DNA of 64,000 bases. Origin: Blastocladiella emersonii ATCC 22665 (Eukaryota > Fungi > Blastocladiomycota). Shown piece by piece: positions 18,334 to 39,383 of the stretch. The notes beneath the pieces are model-generated. The model was not told where the DNA came from. It ran no database searches and saw only the letters and a list, made by a program, of their open reading frames with translations. Numbering within the stretch: the stretch's first letter is position 1; each line of letters opens with the position of its first letter. The position numbers and the translations under genes were made by a program. Location of the stretch: assembly GCA_025594325.1 (NCBI GenBank), contig JANHCV010000015.1:310001-374000 (forward strand). The letters are read 5' to 3'.

Positions 18334-18355
18334 GATAAATATCGGCCGTTCCCCC
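18334..18355 (+). promoter_or_regulatory. Conserved TATA-like core promoter of peptide gene 1
   Basis: GATAAATATCGGCCgttCCCCC begins 92 nt upstream of ATG 18426. The same motif occurs at the same spacing before all five paralogs. Confidence 0.75.
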
Positions 18356-18425
18356 GCCGTCCGAGCTGGGATCAGCACAGAGCAGAGCAAGTACCCCTCC
18401 GCCCGCTTCCATCCCCGCCATCATC

Positions 18426-18741
18426 ATGCAGTTCTCCAAGATCCTCTTCGCCGTCGCCGTCGTCCTCGGCTGCGCCGCCTCGGGCGTGACTGCCGCTCCT
18501 GCCGAGTCCAAGGCCGCTGCCGCTGCTCCCGCCTCCATCGGTGCGTGGCCATCAACTTGCTCTCGCTCGCGCCTTCGAGCTGAATACTTACTTACCCTAC
18601 CCTTTTCCCCATCCAACAGGCATCCAGGGCTGTGCCTACCAGTGCTACCGCGCCTGTTCGTACCGCTGCGGCGGTAACTCGTCGTGCCTCGACGACTGCG
18701 CCCGCGACTGCTCCGACTGCGACGACGGCCGCCGCCCGTAA
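18426..18741 (+). CDS. Secreted 8-Cys peptide, paralog 1 (exons 18426-18540, 18620-18741)
   Basis: Spliced product MQFSKILFAVAVVLGCAASGVTAAPAESKAAAAAPASIGIQGCAYQCYRACSYRCGGNSSCLDDCARDCSDCDDGRRP*. Phase-1 GT-AG intron. Confidence 0.9.
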
Positions 18742-21151
18742 GGTTTTGACGCTCGATCGCCGACTCGCGTGCGCGGGGCCGGTCGTGGCCCGTCGTGGCC
18801 CGTCGTGTCCACGCAACAGATTGATGTCAAGACGGTGGATTGCTGAGAAATAGAAATGTATCGAAAGCTTTTGTTCAATCTGGATGTGTTCCGTTCCTGA
18901 AGGTGAGCTTGACACGCGAAGTTCAAAACACGTGCCCGCCGTGGCAGTCGCTGATCCTTTATTTTGCAGCGAGTCTCCTTTCATATCACGCAATTTATTA
19001 GACTCAAGGCTTTGAGAGATAATCTTGAGCTTCATGGCGTGCAATAGACCTCTTGCACGGGTCCGGCCCAGCGAGTCACGACGACAACGGTGCACTGCAG
19101 ACCCTCGACCGTGGCTTCTAATCGCTCGTCGTCACGGTTTTAGTTGCGGCCCAAACAAAGCACTAGGTGTGTGTGCTGCGCACACACTTGGGTCTCAGCT
19201 GTAGCTTTAGTCTGCCGTGTCGATGATGAGAACAGCAGCGCAGGTACAACGCGCGCGGTAGGCACGCGTCCATGGCCAACTACCCCACGGCCATGAGCAT
19301 CGTGGCCGCGGAAAATCACGTTATTCGGTTGAGCAAGCACTCGAAGCCGTGGCTCATGGTCGGAACTGAGGCTGGACTCAAACATGTCGCGCTGGCTGCC
19401 CGAAAGTCCGTACCAGTTAAGTTAACTGAGTTAACAAAGTTGAGGAGCGGGAGAAGCCCTCGAGGCCAAGGTCGCGGCCGCCCACGCCGCCTTGTTCCTG
19501 AGCGCGGATCGTCCGCAGCCTTGCTGGAGAGAACGTTCGCCCGAGCACCTGCTCATGGTCCCGGTCCATGAGAAGCAGTCTAAGAGCCAGTCGACCTCAC
19601 GCACCTGTTCCCGCCGTGTGCTTTCTGTGTTGCGGTTCGTAAGCTTGCGATCCACCTCTCCGAACTGGTACGAGGCTGCATCGGCGGCACCCTTTGCAAA
19701 TGAAGAAGCCACTAACGAGAAGGCCAAGGCCAGGTCCGCGGCAGCGACGGTCGCTGGGTTGCTGGTCGGCGCGTGACGGATCAAGCGCGGTGTGTTGCAG
19801 TGGGCGGGAAGGTTAATAAAAACTTGGATAATTTGGACGACGTCGTGAAGCGCCGCAGTGTATGGGCGTCACCCTGACTCGCGTTCTGGGCGGTGGCTAT
19901 TGAGCGGAACGCAACGAGCGTCGCCGTGAGGATCTTTCGCACGCGGCCGACGTCTGACCAGCGATCAGGATCGAGCCCAAGGGGATCTTGACGCAGGGCC
20001 AGTCCTTGAAGTCGATCACGTCAACGATGCGCATGTGCGCCTCGCCCGTAACCTCGTCAACGACGCGTTGGAGCGAGAAAGAATTGTGTCGCGCAGGTCG
20101 ACCCGCACGACGCGGTACGCGGTGTCGAGCACGATTCGCGGCTGGCTACTTTCAGTATGATGCAGTGGGCGCGTACACGCCTGACGCTGCTGAGCCTTCT
20201 TCTTTATCGTCGGGCTAGGCTCGGTTAGCTGGCGTGATCCAGTCGTGGTCGTGGATCCTCGGAGTCGTTCTCGCCGCCTGAAACCTATGTTTCGGGCTCG
20301 CGTCGCACCGTTCTCGCCTTGCTGCGTGCATGTTGAGCTTTCTCCAGTCAATGTGTACGTCACGTCATCGCTACCCCTCAGTAATCGCTATGTAGACGCT
20401 ACCCATCGCCAACAATGAAATCATTTACTTGCGAACGATGACCCAAATCCATGACCTTGTACTATCTCGGTAACTAGGCGATTCACGAACTCTAGACTTT
20501 TTTGCGCCTAAAGAGAAAGACAAAGGCGGATCGAAGCGCGTAAGTTCGGGCGGCCGGATTGAAGACAGTTAAGGGAACCAGCGGAAATAGAGGACCTATA
20601 TTTTGCGCCGGGTGTTTCAAAATGATTTTTGCGCGACCTTGATGCTGCGCTGATTGTTGTTCGAAAGCGGTCGTAACGGTTGGCGACGGAGCTGCAGGCG
20701 GGGTCGGAGAGCGGTGGCTCAGCGGGTGGAGCAGCGGGTGGCGCAGCAGTGGGAGACAGCACCGACCGACCGCTCCACTGTCACTCCAGGTTGACGCACA
20801 TTTGAAGACTTTCAAGTAGGTCGCCTCGTCAAATAAGCAGTGTCAGAATTTTTATTACACAGAGCTGAGGCCAATGCGGGGAGTCGGGGACTTGGAATGA
20901 GAGCTAGACCAAGATAGTTGGGGTCGGGGGCCAGAACTGCAGACGAAGCTTGGTTCACGTGCAGGTAGATGTCTCTGATAGGTTCCAATTGCTCAAACAG
21001 AAACTCAGCTTCGCTAAGGGCCCGTTTGGTTCCGGGGTGAATCAGGTGGATCAATCGATTTTACACGGTCCGGTGTTCACCCAGCTGAAACGTGGCATTT
21101 TCACCCCGTCGCGTTCATCGCGGCGTTTGGGTCGACCCCCGGATGAGCTGA

Positions 21152-21616
21152 ATGGAACCCTCGTCGCTGAATTGCCCGTCTGCTCGCCCCCGAAACCTTC
21201 AGGCTGTGCTTCCCGGCCTATATAAACGCTGTTTTCCTTCGTGGGGCAGCTCGACCACCACCGGCGAGTACTCGCACCTCGAGCAGGACGGCAAGGAGTC
21301 TGGTGACGTGGAAGGTGTCGATGGTCAAGACGACGCGGCCCCCGCCAGCAAGCGCAGCCGCACTTCGGACAGCAGCTCGCGTCGCCTCTCGGACTCGGAA
21401 TTCCTCATGGGCATCAAGGAGGTGTTCCAGAGCGTCGCGACCGCCGACTCCAAGCCCGTCTTGACCGCCGCACTTGAATGGGTCCAGGACGCGTACAACG
21501 ACAATGAAGAGTACCAGATCGACGTCGCCACCCGCCTGACCGAGGATCAAGCGCTTCGCGTCATGGCCGTGTCCGAATCGAAGCGCAAGCGCATCCTCGA
21601 GATTTTCATTCAGTAG
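21152..21616 (+). CDS. Harbinger accessory ORF, apparently the C-terminal part of a Myb/SANT-like partner protein, copy 1
   Basis: Convergent with the transposase, as in PIF/Harbinger elements. SSTTTGEYS resembles the end of Myb/SANT-like domains; acidic linker and helical tail follow. No intact N-terminal domain is visible. Confidence 0.5.
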   Translation: MEPSSLNCPSARPRNLQAVLPGLYKRCFPSWGSSTTTGEYSHLEQDGKESGDVEGVDGQDDAAPASKRSRTSDSSSRRLSDSEFLMGIKEVFQSVATADSKPVLTAALEWVQDAYNDNEEYQIDVATRLTEDQALRVMAVSESKRKRILEIFIQ

Positions 21617-21929
21617 CTCACTCGCACATGTCCCCCTCCCCTCGCGTTGCTTCCTGGCCTTGTTCTCGCCCATTTGTGTCCAATACATCTGGCTTTGTGT
21701 CCATCGTATCTTCAATCGTTACCCTTCGCTCGAAAATGACGCGACTCGTTGAGAAACGCGTGGTTCTCAAAGTGTCTCGCACGTCACGTGATTGATCGAC
21801 GCGTCTCCACCGATGCGTTCTGACCTCAGCGACGCGTCAAATCATCTGGAATCGCTTATCTAACGTTATAGTACTTGACAAATCAGTATATTACAGCATG
21901 CATGCGGGTACAACAATTATTTCGCGCCT

Positions 21930-23247
21930 TCAAAGACGGGTCCCACGAGCGGCCATGACGCGCCTGTACTCGGTCCAAAGAACATTTGCGACGCGGTTCC
22001 GAAGCGAGATACCGCGCTGACGAGCTCCGTCCAGCGAGGCCTCGAGGACAGCGGCCTCGTCGTCCTCCTCGTTCTCGTCGTCCAGGGGCTCGCGCCCACG
22101 CACTGGCGCCTCACGCGCCGCGTCCCGCGCGCGCCGGAGCTCCGTCTCGGCGTCGCGAAAGAAGGCGTCGCCGCCTTGGTTCCACTTGTTGATCATGTTG
22201 TGCAGCGTGCAGAGCGCGTACACAAGCTTGACTTGAGTCTTGATTGGGTAGGCCGCGCCAATCGAGAGGACGCGGAAACGCTTCTTGAGCACGCCAAAGA
22301 TATGCTCAATGGAGTTGCGGAGCGACGCGTGACGCAGATTGAAAAGCTCTTCGCGGTTCTTAACTCTACGTACGTTGGTGAAGCAGATGAGATGGCGCCA
22401 ACGTGATGGTCATGGCAGTGAGAACGTACCCATCCTTGCCGCGGGCAAACTCGCGAAGATGATAGCGGGTACCGCTGAAGGGCACGATGATGGACGTGCG
22501 GTTTGCGTAGCCGCCGTCGGCGAGGTAGAAGCGGCCGGCGGGGATCTTGAACCCACGGGCGAAGGCGTCCGAGAGCACGCGCGAGTCATGCGCCTTGCCC
22601 TCCCACCCTGCGAGAACGTAGGTGAAGTTCAAGTCAAAGTCGCAGGCAGCGAGGACATTTGAGTATATGGTCCCCTTGCGGTTTCGGAACGAGTCGTGAA
22701 GCTTAGTGGGCACAACAAACGGGATGTGCGTTCCGTCAAGCGCGCCGACCGCGTTCTGGAACGGAGCGTATTTCGGGTCGTGGGCGATGCGCTCATGCAC
22801 GGGCGTAGAATCGGACGGCTGGACAATGAACTCGGGCATCAGGCGGTACAGAGCGTCGAGCACTTGCTTCAGAACCCTGGACGCGGTCTCGCCAGAGATT
22901 TGGAACCGCTCCCTGAGGTTGCGGTTGGTGCTGCCCTCGCCGGCCATGACAAGAAAAACCATGAAGCGCGCCTCGACGGACAGCTCGCGGCCGTCGGCGA
23001 GAAGGCCACGGTCGCGGAACAGGCGGCAGATGGCCTTGAAGGTCTCGCGGGGCATACGGGCGATTTCCGAAAAACGCGTTTCGCTGTTGCACGTCAGCAG
23101 CTCTTAAACCCACGACTCGCCGGAAAGCGTGGACGTGCGGATAGGCTCCCACGAGCGGCGCTCGTTGCGAGCAGCGAGACGTCGCAGGAGAGCGAGGGCG
23201 GCTGTGAGCATTAGGCCGCGCAGCTTGCGGTTGTATCCCTTGCCCAT
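21930..23247 (-). pseudogene. Harbinger transposase, copy 1, with an in-frame TAA at codon 48
   Basis: GALDGTHI, WEGKAHDSRVL, YLADGGY and, after one intron, LFNLRHASLRNSIEHIFGVLKKRF. TAA at 23104-23106 lies between ATG 23247 and in-frame ATG 23055. Confidence 0.88.
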
Positions 23248-23784
23248 GTTGTTTGAGGGCTCGAGAACACGATGCGTGAGGTTAGGTGTTGATTCGTTGC
23301 AATAAGTGCGGCTGCAAAGAGGTGGGAAAGATTTTATTGCGGGGGGGCGTTCATCCAGCGGGGCGTTTGGTTCGCACGGCCGCTGAGATGAACGGGGGTG
23401 AGGTGAAACGTGGCAACTGTTTCAGCTGATCCACCTGATCTGAACCAAACGGGCCCTAAAGCTACAGCTGAGAACTAAGGTCTCTGTACCGAACCTTGCA
23501 AGAAGACAATCCAATCTCTCAGCAACACGTAAGTCACTTGCAGAGTGGAACGGAAAGCCGACCTCGCTGTTCCGAGCCGCTGTGGCGCAACGCGTCCATG
23601 GCGACAAGGCTTGACGACGCGTTTCTCCTCGACCTCCCTCTAATCACACTCCGATCTCACCATCAACGAGAAATATCGGATCAACCAAAATTTGTCTTTG
23701 TATATCCTTCAAAAATCTCTTGGGGTGGGCAACACGACAGCAGCCGGGGTGCGCGGGCGAAGCCTGGTGGCACTTGGCGGGTGT

Positions 23785-24087
23785 TTACGGGCGGGTGGTC
23801 CCGTGGTCGCAGTCCGAGCAGTCGCGAGCGCAGTCGTCCTCGCACTGGGAGTCGCCATGGCAGCGGGAAATGCACGACATGTAGCAACGATAGCCACAGC
23901 CGCCCTGGATGGCTGTTTGATGGAGAGCGCGCTCGAAATGTCAGGGATTCGCTCATCAACAGTGTCGGAGCTCGAGACACGTACTGGCAGCGGGGACAGC
24001 CGACTTCTCAGCGGGAGCGGCCGACACGCCCGAGGCGGCGAAGCCGAGGACGACGGCGACGGCGAGGAGAACCTTGGAGACGCGCAT
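23785..24087 (-). CDS. Secreted 8-Cys peptide, paralog 2 (exons 24087-23985, 23912-23785)
   Basis: Spliced product MRVSKVLLAVAVVLGFAASGVSAAPAEKSAVPAATIQGGCGYRCYMSCISRCHGDSQCEDDCARDCSDCDHGTTRP*. Confidence 0.9.
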
Positions 24088-24150
24088 GTTGAAGATGTGG
24101 AAGGGTGGAGGGGCTCGAGGATGCTTGCTCTGCTGGTCCAGCTGATGAGG

Positions 24151-24174
24151 CGGGGGGACCGACCGCTATTTATC
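24151..24174 (-). promoter_or_regulatory. Conserved core promoter of peptide gene 2
   Basis: Reverse complement reads GATAAATAGCGGTCggtCCCCCCG, 87 nt upstream of the ATG. Confidence 0.75.
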
Positions 24175-25118
24175 GGCTTCGACTTAACAGCTGAGCGGGT
24201 CGGCTCGCGCGTGGTTACGCGTCAGAGGAGCGGGCAAGGCCTGAGCGGTCGCTCGCCTCGAAAGTCGGACCGGGATCTGCACACCAGCGGTCAACCCGCG
24301 CCTCGATCAAGGACGCGGCGGGGGCCCAAACCCTGCGGTAAGATTCCAGGTTCGGCGCTGAGCTCCTGAGCTGTACTCTGTTCACATGCGACCTTGCACG
24401 CGCGCACGTGCGAAAAAGCGGCCTTGTGCACGTCGGACGCGACGCACGTTGCAACGGTGGAGTCCTCGAGTCGGCGCCCAGCGAGGTCGAAATCCAAGTT
24501 GTGAGACAATTTCATCACGGTATCATTGCTCTGTCGCACCCAAGTTCGACGCGTTTGGTGACGGTCACCTGCTCGGCGGCGCCAAATGGAGGGCTGCGCC
24601 ACCGATGCGACGAACCTCCATCCGTGGTAGGGCGCTCCTGATCTGGGTGCCGCCCACCGGTCACCCGATGCACCGAAATGCACCCCAAATGCCCCCACCC
24701 CGGTCGCAGGACCGATGGACGCGCGTAGTTGTGCTCGCTCGCACGCGTTTTCGTGCGACCAACTTGAAATTGAGGTCGATGTTCGTCGCGTGCCCGCGGT
24801 CACAGGTTCACCCCTCGGTCGCCCGAATGGGCGCTTTGTGAACCACAACGCGTTTTTTGCTGGTTTAAGCGACACGGCGGCGGCTCAACCGTCGACTTTT
24901 CGAGGTCACACGGGCTGCTGGGCGTCACGCGCGCGCGTTCAACGCAGGAATGAGGCCCCAGCGGCTGTGAACCGCAGTTCACAAGCGCTCGATTCGGCTT
25001 CAGTTCTCGAGTCGGCGCTCCGCTGCGCGTGCACGCGCGCAAAGTGCGTGAAGCCGGTGGCAGAGTTTGGAGAGCAAAGTTCTTGGCGACCTTTCGCGCG
25101 AGGGCGTAGGTCCGAGGC

Positions 25119-25140
25119 GATAAATAGCGGCCAGCCCCCC
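25119..25140 (+). promoter_or_regulatory. Conserved core promoter of peptide gene 3
   Basis: GATAAATAGCGGCCagCCCCCC, 93 nt upstream of ATG 25212. Confidence 0.75.
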
Positions 25141-25211
25141 GCTCCTTCGACTGGACCAGCAGAGCAAGCTTTCTCGAGTCTTCCTCCCCACCCCCACAAC
25201 TCACCCTCACC

Positions 25212-25616
25212 ATGAAGTTCTCCAAGGTCCTCCTCGCTGTCGCCGTCGTCCTCGGCTTCGCCGCCTCCGGCGTGTCGGCCGCCCCCGCTGAGAAGTCGAT
25301 CCTTCCCTCGGCTAGCGGTGCGTGGTCATAAAGCTGACCTTTTCTATGCCCCGGCAGCTTACCTTGTTCCCCTTTCTACCTTCGTTCTAGCCGGCATCCA
25401 GGGCTGCTCCTACCAGTACGTAATCGCGCGTGAACGCGAGCTCGCCATGATGCCCTTGCGCATGGACGAGCCTGGACGACGATTCTGGGCGACGTCTAAC
25501 CGTAATTTCACACCAGGTGCTACATTCGTTGCATTCGAGGCTGCGGGAACGACTCGAGCTGCAAGGACGACTGCAACTACATGTGCATGGATTGCGACGA
25601 CGGCCACCGCCCTTGA
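25212..25616 (+). CDS. Secreted 8-Cys peptide, paralog 3 (exons 25212-25317, 25391-25415, 25517-25616)
   Basis: Spliced product MKFSKVLLAVAVVLGFAASGVSAAPAEKSILPSASAGIQGCSYQCYIRCIRGCGNDSSCKDDCNYMCMDCDDGHRP*. The second intron splits the Gln codon (CA|G). Confidence 0.9.
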
Positions 25617-26959
25617 ATTCGACCTGCCCGGCTCGCTCTGGTGTCGCTCGACAGCGTCGCCCACCGTGTCCACAACCCGCCAAGGTGTCGTGGTGACGAT
25701 TTTTTTTGAACGCATACATATACACGAATCTTTTGTAAATGGATTTCACTCGAGAGAGTAAAAACGACAGTTGGCGAGCGGCGATCGAAAGCGCGTTGGC
25801 CAAAACACGTGATCCTGATCGCGACGCATGGAGTGGTCGGTGAAGCGTTGTGACGATCACAGCTCGACGCTACAGTCTCAATGCTTGCTAGTTCGATGTG
25901 TGTGAGTTGCAGCAAATCAACTTACAGTGACTCTTTACTCCAACTTTCACAGCCAAAAAATATCGTTTGTGAGCGAGTTTCGGGGTCAAATTGCGGGTGA
26001 GTGGTAACCGCTTTTCTACCCGTGATCATGAAAAATTCCGATTTATGTGCTCGTCATTACAGATGCTTTAGCCGTCATCGTGGCTCTTTGCGGTTTGTCG
26101 CGGCGTTGCGCAGAAGAAGGGGAGCATCCTTGCGAGGACTGCTCGTTTGGTAGGCTGCAAGCGGAGGCCCCGCTTTGCTACAAACCGCCCAACTTTGATT
26201 ATGAGGGTGTGCCGCTGACGTCAAACAGGCAATGAAAGCCGCCATTTGGGTTTGTCAGCGTCAGGACTTTAATTGTGGCGTACCATCACCCTCGCCAACA
26301 CCTGCTTGTCGCAGTAGAGCTTGTTGGCCTCGACGTTCGTGGTTGTCGCAGCGATGATGGCAGTGCACCTTGCCGCTCTCCTTGATCACTTCCACCACAT
26401 GAGCGTGGATCGGTGGCAGGTGCTCGGCAGAATGATACACGCATTGCTGAGGCAAGCGTACACCTAGTCAAGGAGGTGTATTCCTGCCTTTGGCCCTGAA
26501 CCAGGGCTGGGTGAGGTGAGAGAGGTTGACAAAGCAGGGAGCGGCGCTGCGGGAGCGCGATGAGCCAGCGAGACGAATGCGGGCGTAAACAGGCAAGATC
26601 AGGTGGACGATCACCACGATCGCCACCACATGAACGACGCGTAACAGTTGGTCATAGCGCCTGATCTCAAGCCCGTATCACAACTACAATCAATCAGCTT
26701 GCCCTCCGCGGGCATTCATGAATTCCTTCAACGAATTCCATCAATGCGCTCCTTCAGCCTCAGATCTATCCATTTTTCTCTCTCTATTGCGACGCTCTCA
26801 AAAGGGTGCTCGTTCATCCAAGAGGAGGTTTTATGATCAAAAGTAAGCTCTCATCTCAAACTCGTGGCACTCAAAACAAAATCCGCTTGGAACGTGGGAG
26901 ATCTTGGCGACATCGACCGCGTCACGCGTCGCAGGTCGAGTTGGTGAAACGCTTCGCGC

Positions 26960-27253
26960 TTAGGGGAAGGGCGGGCGGTCGCAGTCTGAGCAGCCGCGGA
27001 TGCAGTCGTTCTCACACTGGCGGTCGCCGTGGCAGCTGTACTCGCACGCATGGTAGCAAGCGAAGCCGCAGCTCTGCACGCCTATGTGATCAGGAATGGG
27101 GATGGGTGAGATGTTGACTCAGAAGAAACCGGTGTGAACACGCTATCACGAACCAACGTTGGCAGCCTTGGACTCGGCGGGGGCAGCCGAGATGCCCGAG
27201 GCGGCAAAGCCAAGGACGACAGCGACGGCGAAGAGGGCCTTGATGAGCTTCAT
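26960..27253 (-). CDS. Secreted 8-Cys peptide, paralog 4 (exons 27253-27154, 27081-26960)
   Basis: Spliced product MKLIKALFAVAVVLGFAASGISAAPAESKAANVGVQSCGFACYHACEYSCHGDRQCENDCIRGCSDCDRPPFP*. Confidence 0.9.
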
Positions 27254-27321
27254 GTTGTTGGCGGTTTGAAGGTCGGGGAGGAGGCTGGGGTTGCTGGCTC
27301 TGCTGAATCGGCTTTGGACCG

Positions 27322-27344
27322 CGGGGGGCTGGCCGCTATCTATC
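27322..27344 (-). promoter_or_regulatory. Conserved core promoter of peptide gene 4
   Basis: Reverse complement reads GATAGATAGCGGCCagCCCCCCG, 91 nt upstream of the ATG. Confidence 0.72.
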
Positions 27345-28608
27345 GCCTCAAGCTCACTCGCCCTCTTCCTTCAGCGTGAAGCCCATGGTACGCTTCGCGT
27401 TGGAGAGCGAAACGGTCGGCAACTTGCACACGCGTGCGTGCGTCGCTGGCGGCGGCTACTTCCCTGGGAGCCGAGACCAGATCAGGAACTTGCAGACGCT
27501 CGGGCACACCGTCATCATATTCGTATGTATTGCGGATCCCAGTCGGGGGACGTGCGTGGGCGAGTGAATTGGTCGCATGATGCACGTACGCGAGTGCGCA
27601 CGCGAGCGGACGAGTTGAGCCGACGTCGAAGCGACACCTTGAATCCTGAACGAGGACCGCGTGCGGATGCGCGCGCGTTGGTCGGGATCGAATCAAGAAA
27701 GTGAGCCCAGATTCGCACACGGATGCCAGAACAGGTGGTGGTGCATGGTGGCCACGCAGGCCACCGCTCTGTTTACTGACATTGCGCACGCGACTCCCAG
27801 GGCCCGAGCTCGCGATTCTTGGGCGCGTGACCAGGCGACGCGCTTTCTTCTCTCGGCCAGGTTGTCAAGCGGGGCATCACTGGGAGCCAACTGCCAGGGA
27901 GTGTGTAAATGCGGGAGGCGACTGACGCCTACGACCTGGTCCGGTCAGCGACGCCTGGCTGCGCGATTCGAACGAATGGCGCGTTGGTGGCTTGAGCAAA
28001 CACTTTTATGGACGCGTTCTGTTATCACGTGTTTTATGTCACGCGCATGCTGCGGCTCGTCTTTGGTGCCTTGCCTTGCCTTGCCTTCACAACCACGCCG
28101 CTGTGTTCAATCAACAAAGGTTGCTTCTTGCGTCGCGCGGTATACAGACCCTGTTGCTCCAACGAATGAGCCCAGCTCGGGCCTGGCGATGCCGAGCATG
28201 GTAAAACCTGAGAGAGCGAGGTAACTAAAGCGGCCGTCTTGTTATTGGCATTAAACTACTCACACTGCTCGTTGCTCACGGCGGGAATCTCGTGAGGTTG
28301 GTGACTGAAGCGACCACCCACTGTTGCCAGCCAAGCACACACTTTCATTGACAAGGGAGATGCAAGCTTGTGCAAACGTTTTTCAAAGCTTTCTCCTTCA
28401 CGCGTTAATAGGTCGCCAAGTCATGAAGAAAGCTAGACCCTCTCTATTCGAAACACGGTTCCATTGTGGAGCTCAACCGACTAGAAACCAATGAATCTTT
28501 TAAGCAAAACTGTCTGTGTATCAATCAATCATCATCGATCTTCTTACTCTATCCCATCATCTCCTCCTTGTCAACAGTTCCGCTTGGCGCCGTCAGGTCC
28601 GAGGCCAT

Positions 28609-29547
28609 TCAGGGGCGGCGGATCGGGTCGTCGCAGCCCATGCAGTCGAGGTTGCACTGGTCCTTGCACTTGTTGTCGTTGCCGCAGCGCTTCGAGCAAG
28701 CGCGGTAGCACCTGGGAGCGAGAAGAAGTGGTTAGACGGTGATCGACGAGGAGCGGGGATCGCGCGGCGCGGCCGTCGCCAAAGAATCGAGTTTCCTCGA
28801 GACCTTCTTGGCGCGGTGCAACGCGACACGACGCGGCCACGGTAGATCGAACGTCGAGATAGAAACGTACTGGTACGAACAGCCCTTGATGGAGGCGGAC
28901 TCGGTGTTCAGGCTGGCGAACTCGCGGCGGATCGGGTCGTCGCAGCCCATGCAGTCCAGGTTGCACTGGTCCTTGCACTTGTTGTCGTTGCCGCAACGCT
29001 TGGAGCACGAGCGGTAGCACCTGGGTAGAAGAGAGGGAGGTTAGGGCGTGATTGATGAGGTGGAATCCGCGATCGCGCGCGGCTCCGCCGTGAAGGATCC
29101 CAGTTTCCTCGGTCCACCACCAGGGGCAAGGCCGGGTTCGCGCAGCGCGGCGACAGCGTAAAATTTTGAGCGAGAAAAAAAAAACGTACTGGTACGAGCA
29201 GCCCTGGATCGAGACGGCCTCGGCGTTGAGGGCGGCGAACTCGCGGCGGATCGGGTCGTCACAGCCCATGCAGTCCAGGTTGCACTGGTCCTTGCACTTG
29301 TTGTCGTTGCCGCAGCGCTTCGAGCAGCGGATGTAGCACTGGTACGAGCAGCCCTCGGTGCCTGGAGCGAGAAAAGGCGAAGAAAACCGTCAGGATCGCG
29401 ACCAGGAAGCCGTGGGAGGTCGTGGCGGGCAGACGACGCACCAGCGGCGATGGCGGCGGCCTTGTTCTCAGCGGGGCCAGCGTTGACGCCCGAGGCGGCG
29501 AAGCCGAGGACAACGGCGACGGCGAGGATGACGTTGGAGACGCGCAT
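28609..29547 (-). CDS. Three-core 8-Cys peptide precursor, paralog 5, 176 aa (exons 29547-29442, 29361-29190, 29020-28871, 28711-28609)
   Basis: Signal/pro region MRVSNVILAVAVVLGFAASGVNAGPAENKAAAIAAG, then three near-identical cores GCSYQCY(IR/RS/RA)CSKRCGNDNKCKDQCNLDCMGCDDPIRR separated by EFAALNAEAVSIQ and EFASLNTESASIK, ending RRP*. All three introns are GT-AG and keep the frame. Confidence 0.92.
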
Positions 29548-29618
29548 GTTGAGGAGGTGAGGGGACGGTGGGAGGAAGGGCTAGAAGATGTTTGCTCTGC
29601 TGGATCACCTCTGTACGG

Positions 29619-29641
29619 CGGGGGACCGGCCGCTATTTATC
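29619..29641 (-). promoter_or_regulatory. Conserved core promoter of peptide gene 5
   Basis: Reverse complement reads GATAAATAGCGGCCggtCCCCCG, 94 nt upstream of the ATG. Confidence 0.75.
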
Positions 29642-33680: not shown

Positions 33681-36290
33681 ATGAAACTACCCGCAACGCC
33701 GCCGTCAAGCGGCCGTGGCCGCCGCGGCCGCGCCGCCGCAAGGCCACCGCTCCTCGCCACGGTCGCGCTGCTCCTCGTCCTCGCCCTCGCCTCGCTCTCC
33801 GCCGTGACCGCGCAGCAGCAGCCGCCGGCCGCCAAGTCGCTGGACCCGAGCTTCTCGGTTCCCGCGATGCAGTGGCAGCGGCTGAACCCGCCGGCCGGCA
33901 CGCCGATGCCGGGCGGGCGGCGCGACGCCGTCTTCGTGTACGACCACACGACCAAGAAGATTGTGCTGTTCGGCGGGCGCACGCGCGACAACGTGCCGCA
34001 GGACGACACGTGGCTGCTCGACATTGTGACGGGGACGTGGCAGCTCGTCGAGAACAACCCGAGCCGCCCGCTGCGCCCGCCGGCCCGGTACGCGGCCGTC
34101 GCGGGCACCGATATCCCGACCACGTCCGACCGCCAGGGCGTCGTCATTGCCACGGGCATGGGGCCGAACGGCCAGATGCTCAACGACGCGTGGGGGTTCC
34201 ACATGAACCTGCTGTCGTGGAACATCATCCCCGCCGCCGGGGACGTGCCGCCCGGCATGTACAACGCGGCCGGTGGGGTGTCGCCCGAGGAGCACACGAT
34301 CGCGCCGTTCCCGACCACCCTGTACGCGGCGCTCGGCACTACCAAGACCGGCGGCGTCACCGACACCTACGCCCTGACCATCACGGGCGGGACGACCGGG
34401 TTCAACTACTCGAACGTCAAGGCCGAGTGGAAGAAGGTCGACGGCGGCACCGCGCGCCCGCCCGCCCGCTCGGACCTCGGCGGGCTCGTCCTCAGCGGCG
34501 AGAAGCTGCTCGCCTTCGGCGGGTGTACGGCCTCGGCGTGCCCCGCCGCCGACGGCTGGGTCGGGACCCCCTCCAACGTCAAGTTCTCGTCGGGCGGCGT
34601 GTGGAAGCAGGTCGACAGCTGCCCGGCCCCGCGCCGCGGCGCCTCGCTCGCGATCCGCCCGGACCTCAACGCCAACAACTACCAGAAGCAGGCCGTCATG
34701 TTCGGCGGCGCCGGCGACCGCGACGCGCCCGGACTTGTCTCCTATTTCGACGGCGACTCCAACTCGTGGGTCAACGTGCTCCCCGACGCGGTCGGCGGCA
34801 GCTACCCGGCGCAGCGCGACGGCGCGTCCATGGCCGCGCACCACGAGAACGGCGCCGTCGTCATGTTCGGCGGCCAGCTCGCCGACGGGTCCGTGTCCAA
34901 CGAGGTGTGGCTGCTCCAGTTCAACGCCCGCGACAACAAGAACACATACGTCCCGTGCTTTGTCAGCCAGGACTCGACCCAGCGCACCGTCCACGGGATC
35001 CTCATGGCCGCGGCCACCGCGCTGCTCACCGCCGCGACGTTCGTCTCGCGCTACTGCAAGCCCGCGCCCGCACCTGGCGCCCGCCCTGCGGGAGCGCGGG
35101 GTGCCGCCAAAAAGCAGCCGCCCGGCGGCGCGCGCAACGCACCCCCTGTCGCCGGTGCCGCTCGCCCGCGCGGCGGCGCGCCCGGCAGCGGCGTGTCCAC
35201 GGCGGGCCCGCAGAACGTGGGCGCGCTCGAGACTCCCGGCCGGCAGGTGTGGCTGTGGGCGCACGGCCTGCTAGCCTTCTTCGGCGTCGCGTGCGCGGGC
35301 GCCGGGTTCTACTTCGCGTACTCTGCGCGCGGCGGGACCGCCGGCCACTTCACCTCGCCGCACGCGGTCGTCGGGATCGTCGTGCTCGGGCTGCTCGCGC
35401 TGCAGGCGCTCTCGGGGCTCGTCCAGCCCGCGAATTTCCCGTCGCTCATGGCCGCCGAGCGCGAGGCGGCCGCGCGGCGTGGGACCGGGGTTGCGGGTGG
35501 TGCAGGGCAGGGCGGGGCGGGCGCGCGGAATACCGCGCTTAATAACGCGCTGCGCCAGATGAACGTGAACCCGAACCAGTTCTCGGGCGGTGCGGGTGGT
35601 CCCGCGTCCGCAGCTGCCGCCGGCGGAGCCGGGAACGGCGCCAAGTCGGCGCGGCGCAGCGGCCCCGGGATCCGCGGGTTCAGCTACGTGCAGTTCTGGT
35701 CGCGCGTGCACCAGACGCTCGGGCTCGGCACGCTGTATCTCATGTACCTGAACGTGTTCCTCGGGCTCGACAAGCTGGGCGCGTCGTGGGTGTGGTTCGT
35801 GGTCGTGGCCGGCGTCCTCGGCCTGCTCGCGTGCGCCTTCATCGTGCTCACGCTCATGGGCAAACCGAACCGCCGCACCTGGTCCGTGCGCATGGCCCGC
35901 AAGCTGCTGCGCAAGAAAGACGGCGTCGCGACGGGCTCCGCGTTGCCCGGACCCGGTGGGGTGGGCGGCGGCGCGTCGTCGGTCGCCCTCCGTGGCCCGA
36001 TCGATGATGACGACGAGGACGACGAGGACGACGACGAGTACGACAACGAGTACCGCTCCGGCGGTGGCGGCGGCGGCGGGCCCGGCGGGATGCACCGCCA
36101 CCACCCCGGCGGCAACGCGAATAACCCGACGGGCACGTTCCAGCGGTCGAACCGCAACGGCGGCGCCCTGGGCCACCACGGCAGCGACGGGTCCCTCGGC
36201 CGCCACGACGACGAGGGCGGCGACATGTACGACCGCGAGGTCGTGATCATGACGATCCCGAAGCCCAAGCTGCGCATCGTCAACTCGTAG
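33681..36290 (+). CDS. Signal peptide + Kelch beta-propeller + cytochrome b561-like membrane domain (869 aa, intronless)
   Basis: Kelch-like repeats (IVLFGG..DTW, LLAFGG, VMFGG..NEVW). Membrane helices carry four His at b561-like positions (VHGILM, AHGLLA, SPHAVVG, RVHQTLG). Confidence 0.75.
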   Translation: MKLPATPPSSGRGRRGRAAARPPLLATVALLLVLALASLSAVTAQQQPPAAKSLDPSFSVPAMQWQRLNPPAGTPMPGGRRDAVFVYDHTTKKIVLFGGRTRDNVPQDDTWLLDIVTGTWQLVENNPSRPLRPPARYAAVAGTDIPTTSDRQGVVIATGMGPNGQMLNDAWGFHMNLLSWNIIPAAGDVPPGMYNAAGGVSPEEHTIAPFPTTLYAALGTTKTGGVTDTYALTITGGTTGFNYSNVKAEWKKVDGGTARPPARSDLGGLVLSGEKLLAFGGCTASACPAADGWVGTPSNVKFSSGGVWKQVDSCPAPRRGASLAIRPDLNANNYQKQAVMFGGAGDRDAPGLVSYFDGDSNSWVNVLPDAVGGSYPAQRDGASMAAHHENGAVVMFGGQLADGSVSNEVWLLQFNARDNKNTYVPCFVSQDSTQRTVHGILMAAATALLTAATFVSRYCKPAPAPGARPAGARGAAKKQPPGGARNAPPVAGAARPRGGAPGSGVSTAGPQNVGALETPGRQVWLWAHGLLAFFGVACAGAGFYFAYSARGGTAGHFTSPHAVVGIVVLGLLALQALSGLVQPANFPSLMAAEREAAARRGTGVAGGAGQGGAGARNTALNNALRQMNVNPNQFSGGAGGPASAAAAGGAGNGAKSARRSGPGIRGFSYVQFWSRVHQTLGLGTLYLMYLNVFLGLDKLGASWVWFVVVAGVLGLLACAFIVLTLMGKPNRRTWSVRMARKLLRKKDGVATGSALPGPGGVGGGASSVALRGPIDDDDEDDEDDDEYDNEYRSGGGGGGGPGGMHRHHPGGNANNPTGTFQRSNRNGGALGHHGSDGSLGRHDDEGGDMYDREVVIMTIPKPKLRIVNS

Positions 36291-36507
36291 CGTAGTTGAT
36301 GTGTCGACGACTCTTTTGTACTTTCAGTCATTCCACGTGTGCATAATATGCTAGATCACATTTCTCTCTTCATTCACTCCTAACCCGCGTGTCTCCCACC
36401 GCGACGGCGTTTGGCTCGAGCACTACGATCGCGCTCTTCTCGCTCTCCGATAATGTATCAGCGCGTCATCCGCGCTAGTCGAAGAACTGCAACTGAATGA
36501 ATCAACC

Positions 36508-38258
36508 ATGAGCGATCCGAACGAACCCACCGCCGTGGCCACGGCCACGGCCACCACCAACCCGCCGTCCTCGTCGCTCAACGACTCGGGCACCACCGGC
36601 ATCCCGCCTTCCTCCCCACCCAAGGACGGCGGCGGGGATCCCAACGGCGATCCCGCGCAGCTGCCCGAGCTCGCGCACGACGCGACGACGATGGGCAGCG
36701 GGAACGGCGTGACGTTCGGCGGCGCGGCGCCCGCCGCCATGGCCATGGACGCGCACGCGGCGCGCGTGCACCGGTCGTGCTGCAACTTGCGCAGTACGTT
36801 ACAAGCGGCGGCAAGAGCGAGGTACCGGAACTGACGCCGCGGCGCGCATCTGTGTAGAGGAGATCAACGAGGGCAACGCGGTGGTCGACGTGACGCCGTC
36901 GCCGCTGTCGTACCGCGTCGACTACGAGTCGCTCGAGTACCGCAGCCGGTTCGCGGGGCACTCGATCTCGGGGCGGCATAACCCGCACGGTACATTGTCG
37001 TTCACTCGGTACGAGGCCAGCAACTGACGCGCCGCGCCGCTCCGTAGACCCCGAAACCCCCGCGCCGAACGCGTACCAGTCGCCCGCTCAACTCGGCGAC
37101 GGCGTTCCGAAATGGTCGATCGCGAACAAGTTCATCGTCCTACACGACTCGCACCCTGGCCCGAGCGATTACAGCCCCGAGTCGCTGCGGGTGCGGAGCA
37201 AGGCGCCCGAGTACTCGATGCGGCGCAAGACGGGCCCGCCGCTCTTCTTCACCAAGGAAAACCCGCCCGGGTGCAACGAGTACCACCCGAAACTCGAGCC
37301 GAGCCAGGTCGCCGCTACCGTCAAGGGCCGGTACAAGGAGACCAAGATCATTAAGACCCCCGGCCCCGCTAACTACCTGATCCCGTCCGGCGTGCCGACC
37401 GGGCCGCAGTTCTCGATGGTCGGCCGTGGGGAGTTTTTGCCAGAAGACGACCCCGCGTACTGGACCGAGCCCGGGCCTGCGGTCCCGCCGGGGCCGTCGT
37501 CGTACTCGCCCAACGCCAAGGCCACGCTCACCCACGCCCCGACGTACTCGCTCGGAACACGCTACGCGATGCCCGCGCCCCACGACGTGTCGCCCGGACC
37601 CGCTTACCGCCCGACGATCGGCACGATCGCTAAGAACGACGGACCGCGCGTCGCGCTCAAGAGCCGCCATCCCGAGCGGCGGAGTCCGTCTTCTTGGGGT
37701 AGAGGGACGATGGCCACCGACCACTGACCGTCGCCGCGCCGTGTAGAGCACCTCCCCGGCCCCGCCGACTACGCTCCGTCGGCGCCCGTGACGGTGCGCG
37801 ACTTGGTCCACCAGCTGCAGCAGCGGAAGGCGGGTGCAGCCGCGATCCAGTCGCGGCGCAAGGCCGAGCTCGCTGCCGCGGCCGCTGCCATGGAAGCCGC
37901 CGCCGCTGCCGCTGCTGCCGCTGAACAACAACAGCAGCTCGCGCCGCCACCGCGCCGCCGCGTCTCGCACCCGACGCCCGGGCCCGCCGACTACGACACG
38001 CGGCCCGCGCACCGCATGCAGTACGCGAGCCCGCCCAAGTACTCGCTGTCGTCGCGGCCGGTCGGGCGCGACGGGGTGCCGGTCGGTGGCGTGGGGAGCG
38101 GGAACGGCGCAGGACCCGCGCCGAACGCGTACGTGCCGAGCTCCGACAGCTTCCGTAAGGTGCCGGGACCGAAGGCGGCGTCGATGAAGGGTCGCCTCGG
38201 GGATAACGTCATGGTGTTTCCGAGTCTCCGGCTCGACACGCTGCGGATCAATGTGTAA
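36508..38258 (+). CDS. SHIPPO-repeat (ODF3-like) protein, multi-exon; start codon uncertain
   Basis: Repeated PGPxxY units: PAPNAYQ, HPGPSDYSP, TPGPANY, PGPSSYSP, SPGPAY, PGPADYAP, TPGPADYD, PAPNAY, with P(K/Q)(F/Y)S linkers. Confidence 0.8.
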
Positions 38259-38442
38259 GTGGGGGATGGGTGGACGGGGTGCGAGTGTAATATAGCTGTA
38301 TTGTATGATGATATGAGGGGTCGGCGTAGTGGCGTCGCCGCCTGGCGTGACCCCGGCGACCGCCGACCACCGACCAAGTTGGTCGCCGGCTTCTCTCTTC
38401 AACGAGTTCTCCAACCCCCTGTTCCTGCAACGCATCGAAACC

Positions 38443-38922
38443 ATGTCAAACTCCATGAAACCTTCCGTCGAGACCCTGCTGCACGACCCGGTGGCGCCGG
38501 CCTCCGACGCGGCGGCAACGAAGCCGACCGAGGCGGCGGCCAAGCTCAACCGGTTCAACAACACCGAGTGGATCGACAAGGTGAACCCGCAGCCGCACCG
38601 GTGCAACGACCCGTACCTCGAGGACCTGATCGCCGCCGTGCAGACGTGGCCGCTCGAGGTGCGCGGGCCCTGGAAGGCCTTTTGGGCGTGCATGCGGACC
38701 AAGGAGGGGTACGACCACGGTTTAGCGAGTGGTTGAGAGTGCGGTACTAACGATTGTGCCATGAGTAGCGAGCCGATGCCGCCGCGGTACCAGCGCACGC
38801 AGCCCATCGAGTACCAGCCCAAGAAGCCCGAGCGCGGCACCGACCCGCTCGCGTTCCTCAAGGGCCTCGAGGATAAGGCCAAGGCCGAGATCGACGCGGC
38901 CACGGGGAAGAAACACGAGTAA
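38443..38922 (+). CDS. Small hypothetical protein, 2 exons
   Basis: Strong GC3 codon bias. An intron from 38709 (CTAAC branch point) joins ...CMRTKEG to EPMPPRYQRTQPIEY...; stop TAA. Confidence 0.6.
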
Positions 38923-39383
38923 GTAACCGTCCGAATATAGCACATCTGGTCGTATCGTGCCCGTTTCGCCCGTCGTCGTTCGGACCGGCGTGACGTCCGC
39001 TGCCTGCGGATCAGAGCTACATGAACGGGGTTTGGTGCGTCGTGCCGACGGGGGCGACGCTCATGGAGATCACACGGCGCTTATGGTTCTTCCGCGGGCA
39101 AGCTGCTCGCGCAGCAACTTGCTGAGCCACGACCATCGAGCCGTCAAACCGGCTTTCCTCGCTCCTCTGCCGCCCTACGCGTAGTCGGCGCTCGAGTAGG
39201 CGCTCACCGTGTGAGAACCCGCCCCTCTCGTTGCTGCTCGGTTGGACGGTCGCTCGTTGATCGTTGCCGTGATCCCTCCCTCAACGCGACAATTGCACGA
39301 CACGCCTACTCTCTCAGTAATGGCCCAACCGCGCGATGATGGGTAACACTATCGCTTCCATTCCACCCTCTCCTCCGCCCGCA

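Follow-up and report, generated by a model that had tools for sequence, protein, structure and literature searches.

The locus considered here raises the question of whether three near-identical, cysteine-rich modules encoded by a single gene are secreted as a polyprotein that is cut into separate peptides, or whether they remain together as one protein. The host, Blastocladiella emersonii, is an early-diverging zoosporic fungus (a blastoclad) and not a dikaryon. The window denotes the whole 64-kb stretch of DNA that was analyzed, and all positions are counted from its first letter.

On the minus strand, between positions 29547 and 28609, a predicted spliced coding sequence is composed of four exons and three GT..AG introns; translation of the exons remains in frame over 531 nt and gives a protein of 176 amino acids (Table 1). 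The donor sites are of the fungal type, and branch sites resembling CTAAC are present in the introns. Both intron 2 and intron 3 split the Gln codon of GCSYQ/C in phase 2, and exon 3 is therefore a symmetric repeat unit of 150 nt. Within intron 2, at window position 29175, the contig from one low-depth run is 2 bases short in a T10 homopolymer; the difference reflects either length variation or an error of sequencing, and the frame is unaffected, the position being intronic.

The 176-residue protein comprises a 23-residue signal peptide, an Ala-rich stretch of 15 residues, three cores of 37 residues each, two spacers of 13 residues each (EFAALNAEAVSIQ and EFASLNTESASIK) that join the three cores, and a final Pro. 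The signal peptide displays n-, h-, and c-regions ending in VNA/G, and inspection revealed no other hydrophobic stretch in the protein. The cores share the sequence GCSYQCYxxCSKRCGNDNKCKDQCNLDCMGCDDPIRR and vary only at the two x positions (IR, RS, and RA), while their Cys framework, C-x3-C-x3-C-x3-C-x5-C-x3-C-x3-C-x2-C, is invariant in all seven cores of the window. At the DNA level, the repeat is a tandem unit with a period of 309/319 bp. A preliminary description of this DNA had proposed the four-exon, three-core layout, and the minus-strand reading with exon translation bore it out in every sequence detail: a single signal peptide precedes three near-identical cores ending in DDPIRR, the spacers follow the internal RR pairs in the translation, exon 4 ends in RRP and a stop codon, and the internal KR (CSKRC), to which attention had been drawn, is found in every core.

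Table 1. Features of the three-core gene and of its single-core paralogs, with positions in the window
Feature	Position	Strand	Content	Remark
Exon 1	29547-29442	-	ATG, 23-aa signal peptide, and short Ala-rich N-terminal stretch	translation
Signal peptide	29479-29547	-	23 aa, predicted cut VNA/GP	site judged by inspection
Intron 1	29441-29362	-	80 nt, GTGCGT..CAG, phase 1	position common to 5/5 family genes
Exon 2	29361-29190	-	core 1, RR site 1, spacer 1, first five residues of core 2	
Core 1	29243-29353	-	in exon 2	
RR site 1	29243-29248	-	in exon 2	
Spacer 1	29204-29242	-	in exon 2	
Intron 2	29189-29021	-	169 nt, GTACGT..CAG, phase 2, within Gln codon of GCSYQ/C, CTAAC branch-like site	
Exon 3	29020-28871	-	symmetric 150-nt repeat exon: remainder of core 2, RR site 2, spacer 2, start of core 3	
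RR site 2	28924-28929	-	in exon 3	
Spacer 2	28885-28923	-	in exon 3	
Intron 3	28870-28712	-	159 nt, GTACGT..CAG, phase 2	paralog of intron 2
Exon 4	28711-28609	-	remainder of core 3, terminal RR (28615-28620), Pro, TGA (28611-28609)	
TATA-like promoter motif GATAAATAGCGG	29630..29641	-	94 nt upstream of ATG of three-core gene	
CAGCAGAGCAA block	~29592-29602	-	after TATA-like motif of three-core gene	
Paralog P1	18426..18741	+	single-core, 78 aa, ends GRRP-stop	
Paralog P2	23785..24087	-	single-core, 76 aa, ends TTRP-stop	
Paralog P3	25212..25616	+	single-core, 76 aa, ends GHRP-stop	phase-1 intron and intra-core phase-2 intron
Paralog P4	26960..27253	-	single-core, 73 aa, ends PPFP-stop	

The base composition of the predicted coding sequence can be compared with that of its surroundings. 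GC at the three codon positions amounts to 0.51/0.50/0.95, against 0.68/0.54/0.91 and 0.69/0.62/0.91 in known genes of the window, the GC content of which is 66% overall; the periodicity is lost in introns 2 and 3, where only 0.57 of third triplet positions are GC. Between repeat units, 8-11 of 114 nt differ in the cores (7-10%) and 8 of 36 nt in the spacers (22%), and introns 2 and 3 match in 114 of 180 aligned columns (63% identity, 37% divergence). Since divergence is lowest in the cores, higher in the spacers, and highest in the introns, constraint or homogenization of the sequence tracks the predicted exon and core boundaries. In addition, contigs from three public DNA runs (one sample) span each unique repeat junction with no differences and at a single-copy, flank-like depth, which argues against an assembly artefact, although the assembly may have been built from these very runs, which thus do not count as independent support for the junctions. 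Judged from the sequence, the predicted gene with its three-core architecture is very probably real.

The gene belongs to a small family. A six-frame scan of the window recovered the Cys framework seven times, three times in the three-core gene and four times in single-core genes, and these four paralogs are all found within a distance of 11 kb. All five family genes encode nearly the same signal peptide, and the motif GATA(A/G)ATA(G/T)CGG is located 87-94 nt upstream of the ATG in each of the five, with no further copy in the 64-kb window. Five family signal peptides and five promoter motifs are thus set against seven cores; cores 2 and 3 have neither a signal peptide nor a promoter motif of their own and therefore belong to the three-core gene rather than to separate genes. 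The motif opens a promoter-like block common to the five genes (window 18334-29641), in which it is followed by a C-rich stretch and then, ~39 nt downstream, by CAGCAGAGC(A/C)A. This shared block suggests co-regulation and a core promoter of the TATA-plus-initiator type.

The distribution of introns bears on the origin of the gene. Both introns of the family are present in P3; in the three-core gene, core 1 has only the phase-1 intron, and cores 2 and 3 have only the intra-core intron. The safest statement is that a single-core ancestor would have gained its three cores by tandem duplication of a ~310-bp unit consisting of a 150-nt exon and an intron, and either unequal crossing-over within introns or tandem gene fusion could have brought about the duplication. 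By eye, the end of each spacer together with GCSYQ closely matches the tiny exon 2 of P3. The best local alignment of the spacer with exon 1 of its own gene (FAA..NA) has a score that was equalled by 16-45 of 500 shuffles and is not significant. The comparison is no more than suggestive of descent of the spacer from the signal-peptide and pro-region part of a downstream gene copy that had become fused. Skipping of exon 3 (28871-29020) would yield an in-frame two-core isoform, and the number of cores may be set by alternative splicing.

To model the fold, AlphaFold2 was run with the seven window cores as the alignment. In the exon-2 piece of the three-core gene, helices were placed at residues 4-16 and 20-34, with a pLDDT of 75-86 over the core block, followed by coil at residues 35-38 (DPIR) and a low-confidence helix in the spacer; in the P1 core, helices were placed at residues 4-16 and 20-35, with a mean pLDDT of 82.7. 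Each core is thus predicted to form a helix-loop-helix hairpin. Because Cys residues recur along each helix at i, i+4, i+8, and i+12, the arrangement is most naturally read as a disulfide ladder with four rungs, for which we infer the pairing C1-C8, C2-C7, C3-C6, and C4-C5.

A Foldseek search of the PDB returned nothing significant for either model. For the P1 core there were three matches, headed by two plant alpha-hairpinins, nigellin-1.1 and the Jug r 2 leader (TM 0.55, rmsd 2.0-2.6 Å, E 6.8-9.0, probability at most 0.15), and for the exon-2 piece the non-significant matches included a small Tim protein and, again, the Jug r 2 leader. In a wide PDB search with VIA-align, all matches were of a generic helical kind and Z did not exceed 4.5, and Foldseek against the AlphaFold DB clusters yielded only weak or generic helical ones. 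Among the latter is A0A1Y2HMJ3, a 169-residue 'WAP domain-containing protein' that aligns over 35 residues of the core with 40% identity (probability 0.44, rmsd 2.9 Å). Its accession range is presumably that of Catenaria anguillulae, another blastoclad, and the protein may be a remote relative, perhaps one with several cores. Other assignments were considered and rejected: a hydrophobin is ruled out by the Cys pattern, which lacks adjacent Cys pairs and is not C-CC-C-C-CC-C, and has no Pfam match at E up to 10; a metallothionein-like reading is ruled out by the Cys pattern together with the signal peptide; and a hairpinin of the trypsin-inhibitor type is ruled out by a loop that lacks a conserved basic residue.

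With regard to processing, Le Marquer et al. (2019) define fungal Kex2-processed repeat proteins (KEPs) in silico by a signal peptide, a total of four or more KR/RR fragments of which three or more are repeated, and repeats making up at least 15% of the length. The three-core protein formally falls within this definition, the signal peptide and the lack of a transmembrane segment being judged by inspection. In silico cutting at KR and RR generates seven fragments, among them three identical 24-mers and three similar 26-28-mers, which make up most of the protein. When the cuts are placed at RR only, the products have 50-52 residues and 5.58-5.61 kDa, or, with the RR removed, 48-50 residues, 5.26-5.30 kDa, and a pI of 4.6-5.0. 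After removal of the signal peptide, the single-core paralogs have 50-55 residues, 5.36-5.70 kDa, and a pI of 4.9-5.0. Given this match in size and pI, cleavage would regenerate units equivalent to the products of the single-core genes. The preliminary description had anticipated products of ~4.5-5 kDa, which has to be revised to 5.3-5.6 kDa (48-52 residues), the spacer remaining attached.

The position and descent of the RR sites are also informative about processing. The sites fall in the non-helical, low-confidence, and least ordered part of the AlphaFold model, and the spacers beyond them diverge about three times faster than the cores. The C-terminal tail xRP-stop is present in three of the four paralogs, and the RRP of the three-core protein represents the ancestral C-terminus of the family (GRRP, TTRP, GHRP, and PPFP at the paralog ends); the earlier suggestion that the terminal RRP serves to protect the last copy is therefore unnecessary. 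Because the RR at the junctions and the terminal RRP both correspond to this ancestral tail, the internal RR pairs are inherited and not evidently selected. Moreover, their conservation is uninformative, since recent origin or homogenization has left the three repeats so alike.

The dipeptides canonically cut by Kex2 are KR and RR, and the yeast enzyme prefers an aliphatic or basic residue at P4 and cuts RR less well than KR. In the three-core protein, P4 of the RR sites is Pro. Glu follows the dibasic cut in the yeast alpha-factor precursor, as it does in RR/EF here. The internal KR occupies residues 14-15 of the modeled piece, which places it inside the predicted helix 1, flanked by two half-cystines and within the best-predicted region; it is absent from all four paralogs and is thus not a feature of the family. 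It is plausible that the predicted fold shields this pair from cutting.

We propose that the precursor is processed by a kexin-type protease at RR into three peptides, a reading to which we assign a probability of roughly 0.5. According to this proposal, the precursor would enter the ER, where each core would fold and oxidize. Late in the secretory pathway, the exposed RR in RR/EF would be cut on its C-terminal side by a convertase of the kexin type, freeing three peptides of ~50 residues that match the single-core gene products, and the C-terminal RR would probably be trimmed after cleavage. The internal KR would be spared, as it would sit in a disulfide-locked first helix. The net effect would be three peptide doses per transcript. 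A role of the peptides in defense or signaling is a guess; with an acidic pI, they are unlikely to act as classical cationic antimicrobials.

The same features can be read differently. The protein could be secreted without being cut, as three bead-like hairpin modules on flexible linkers, so that the gain would lie in valency or avidity and not in peptide release, in the manner of Cin1 or of the multi-unit hydrophobins of Claviceps. The RR pairs would then be accounted for by descent from the xRP-stop tail, the residue at P4 is a poor one, and a fungal precedent exists in Cin1, with eight tandem repeats that are disulfide-bonded and helix-loop-helix and are not reported to be cleaved. However, this leaves aside that cleavage would yield exact mimics of what the paralogs produce and that the spacers evolve faster than the cores; in addition, when Glu follows a dibasic pair in a linker predicted to be flexible, a Golgi that contains kexin usually cuts it at least in part. 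Persistence of the intact protein is regarded as somewhat unlikely. Cleavage could, on the other hand, extend to the internal KR, giving nicked two-chain peptides held by disulfides or inactivated peptides. KR is the preferred Kex2 dipeptide, and the two sets of three repeated fragments obtained in silico are what combined cutting would produce, but proteases require an extended substrate, whereas this KR is located between half-cystines of the predicted helix 1 in the best-predicted part of the model, and no paralog contains it. We consider this outcome improbable to a high degree.

Finally, the locus might be non-functional, as a silent or decaying duplicate, or its exon model might be wrong, for instance with exon 3 as a skipped cassette that leaves one- or two-core isoforms. 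Neither the published annotation nor any of the protein collections searched contains the gene, and skipping of exon 3 would stay in frame, introns 2 and 3 having the same phase and splice sites. Against a non-functional locus stand the intact frame with a GC3 of 0.95, the intact promoter motif and signal peptide, and cores that are conserved far better than the introns, which together make such an explanation highly improbable.

Like the fungal KEPs, which include the yeast alpha-factor precursor, Ustilago maydis Rep1, and Candida Ece1, the three-core protein carries, behind a signal peptide, three or more nearly identical units bounded by dibasic sites, and the Rep1 peptides, of 35-53 residues, are close in size to its predicted products. 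However, the units of KEPs are mostly short and linear, or amphipathic and able to form amyloid-like fibrils, whereas those of the three-core gene are folded modules with eight Cys. The KEP sites are usually L-x-K-R, in contrast to RR with Pro at P4. The three-core gene further differs in having three units only, a blastoclad host, and a cleavage that is predicted.

The plant alpha-hairpinin precursors (MiAMP2, Tk-AMP-X, Sm-AMP-X, the vicilin-buried Jug r 2 leader, and nigellin) contain a signal peptide and 2-12 tandem modules that are cut apart. Their helix-loop-helix with disulfides of the CX3C type resembles the fold predicted for the B. emersonii cores, and the alpha-hairpinin motif CX3C-Xn-CX3C is contained in the longer Cys ladder of these cores; yet alpha-hairpinins have two nested disulfides, i.e., two rungs compared with the predicted four. 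They also belong to another kingdom, depend on other proteases, and show no sequence homology, the fold match being non-significant (E 6.8-9). The resemblance is one of convergence and not of membership. In the way it is predicted to work, the three-core gene is like the KEPs and the alpha-hairpinin precursors; by descent, it is a member of neither.

Two further kinds of secreted fungal protein are built of tandem disulfide-bonded modules and were compared by description only. Cin1 of Venturia inaequalis consists of eight repeats of 52-64 residues with a helix-loop-helix core, for which cleavage is not reported, and its modules carry four Cys versus eight in the B. emersonii cores. The multi-unit hydrophobins of Claviceps are likewise secreted fungal proteins of tandem disulfide-bonded modules, and the hydrophobin pattern C-CC-C-C-CC-C is absent from the B. 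emersonii cores.

Taken in this light, the cores could tentatively be placed in a new class of four-disulfide helical hairpins made as a kexin-cut polyprotein, which would be an independent fungal counterpart of the plant multimodular alpha-hairpinin precursors and the first fungal repeat precursor with disulfide-folded units; we hold this to be possible, with the odds slightly against it. If the protein is expressed and cut, the Kex2-repeat-precursor strategy would reach beyond short linear peptides to folded, disulfide-stapled modules, would extend to an early-diverging zoosporic fungus, and would parallel the alpha-hairpinin cassettes of plants. With single-core paralogs beside the three-core gene, the locus offers a simple test bed for what tandem modules add.

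Searches beyond the window brought up no homolog. Among 1.84 billion representative proteins, a phmmer search with the exon-2 piece matched three, all of them bacterial repeat proteins without the Cys framework and hence spurious. The profile built from the seven cores had no match at E up to 10 among 5.8 billion proteins of 31-98 residues. The stop-free reading from exon 2 into intron 2 served as a query that admitted proteins of 150-476 residues, none of which had words in common with core plus spacer; the product of the three-core gene is therefore absent from the protein collection. No homolog was found in JGI metagenome contigs, no Pfam model matched at E up to 10, hydrophobin models included, and the best score in the ESM Atlas was an uninformative 0.78.

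The protein collection includes the NCBI proteins of B. emersonii ATCC 22665, as illustrated by a neighboring kinesin ORF that is identical to H9P43_009630 (100% identity), and the five family genes, being absent from it, are therefore missing from the published annotation. The assembly, GCA_025594325.1, in which the window corresponds to JANHCV010000015.1:310001-374000, comprises 21 contigs and 34.27 Mb, with 10,031 genes annotated ab initio with funannotate and no mention of RNA-seq. One published locus near the gene starts at window 34360 and does not reach the three-core gene. The predicted peptide family is lineage-restricted, secreted, and unannotated in B. emersonii. The published ab initio annotation of a model fungus thus appears to lack a whole family of small, intron-split genes for secreted peptides, which matters for surveys of secretomes and effectors in early fungi. 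Elsewhere in the window, the public annotation places a Kelch-repeat protein of 1388 residues at 33681-38258 on the plus strand, overlapping a 601-residue ORF at 37140-38945 on the minus strand. Because of this overlap with the annotated plus-strand protein, the 601-residue ORF is probably not a gene; long antisense ORFs are frequent in the GC-rich genome of B. emersonii.
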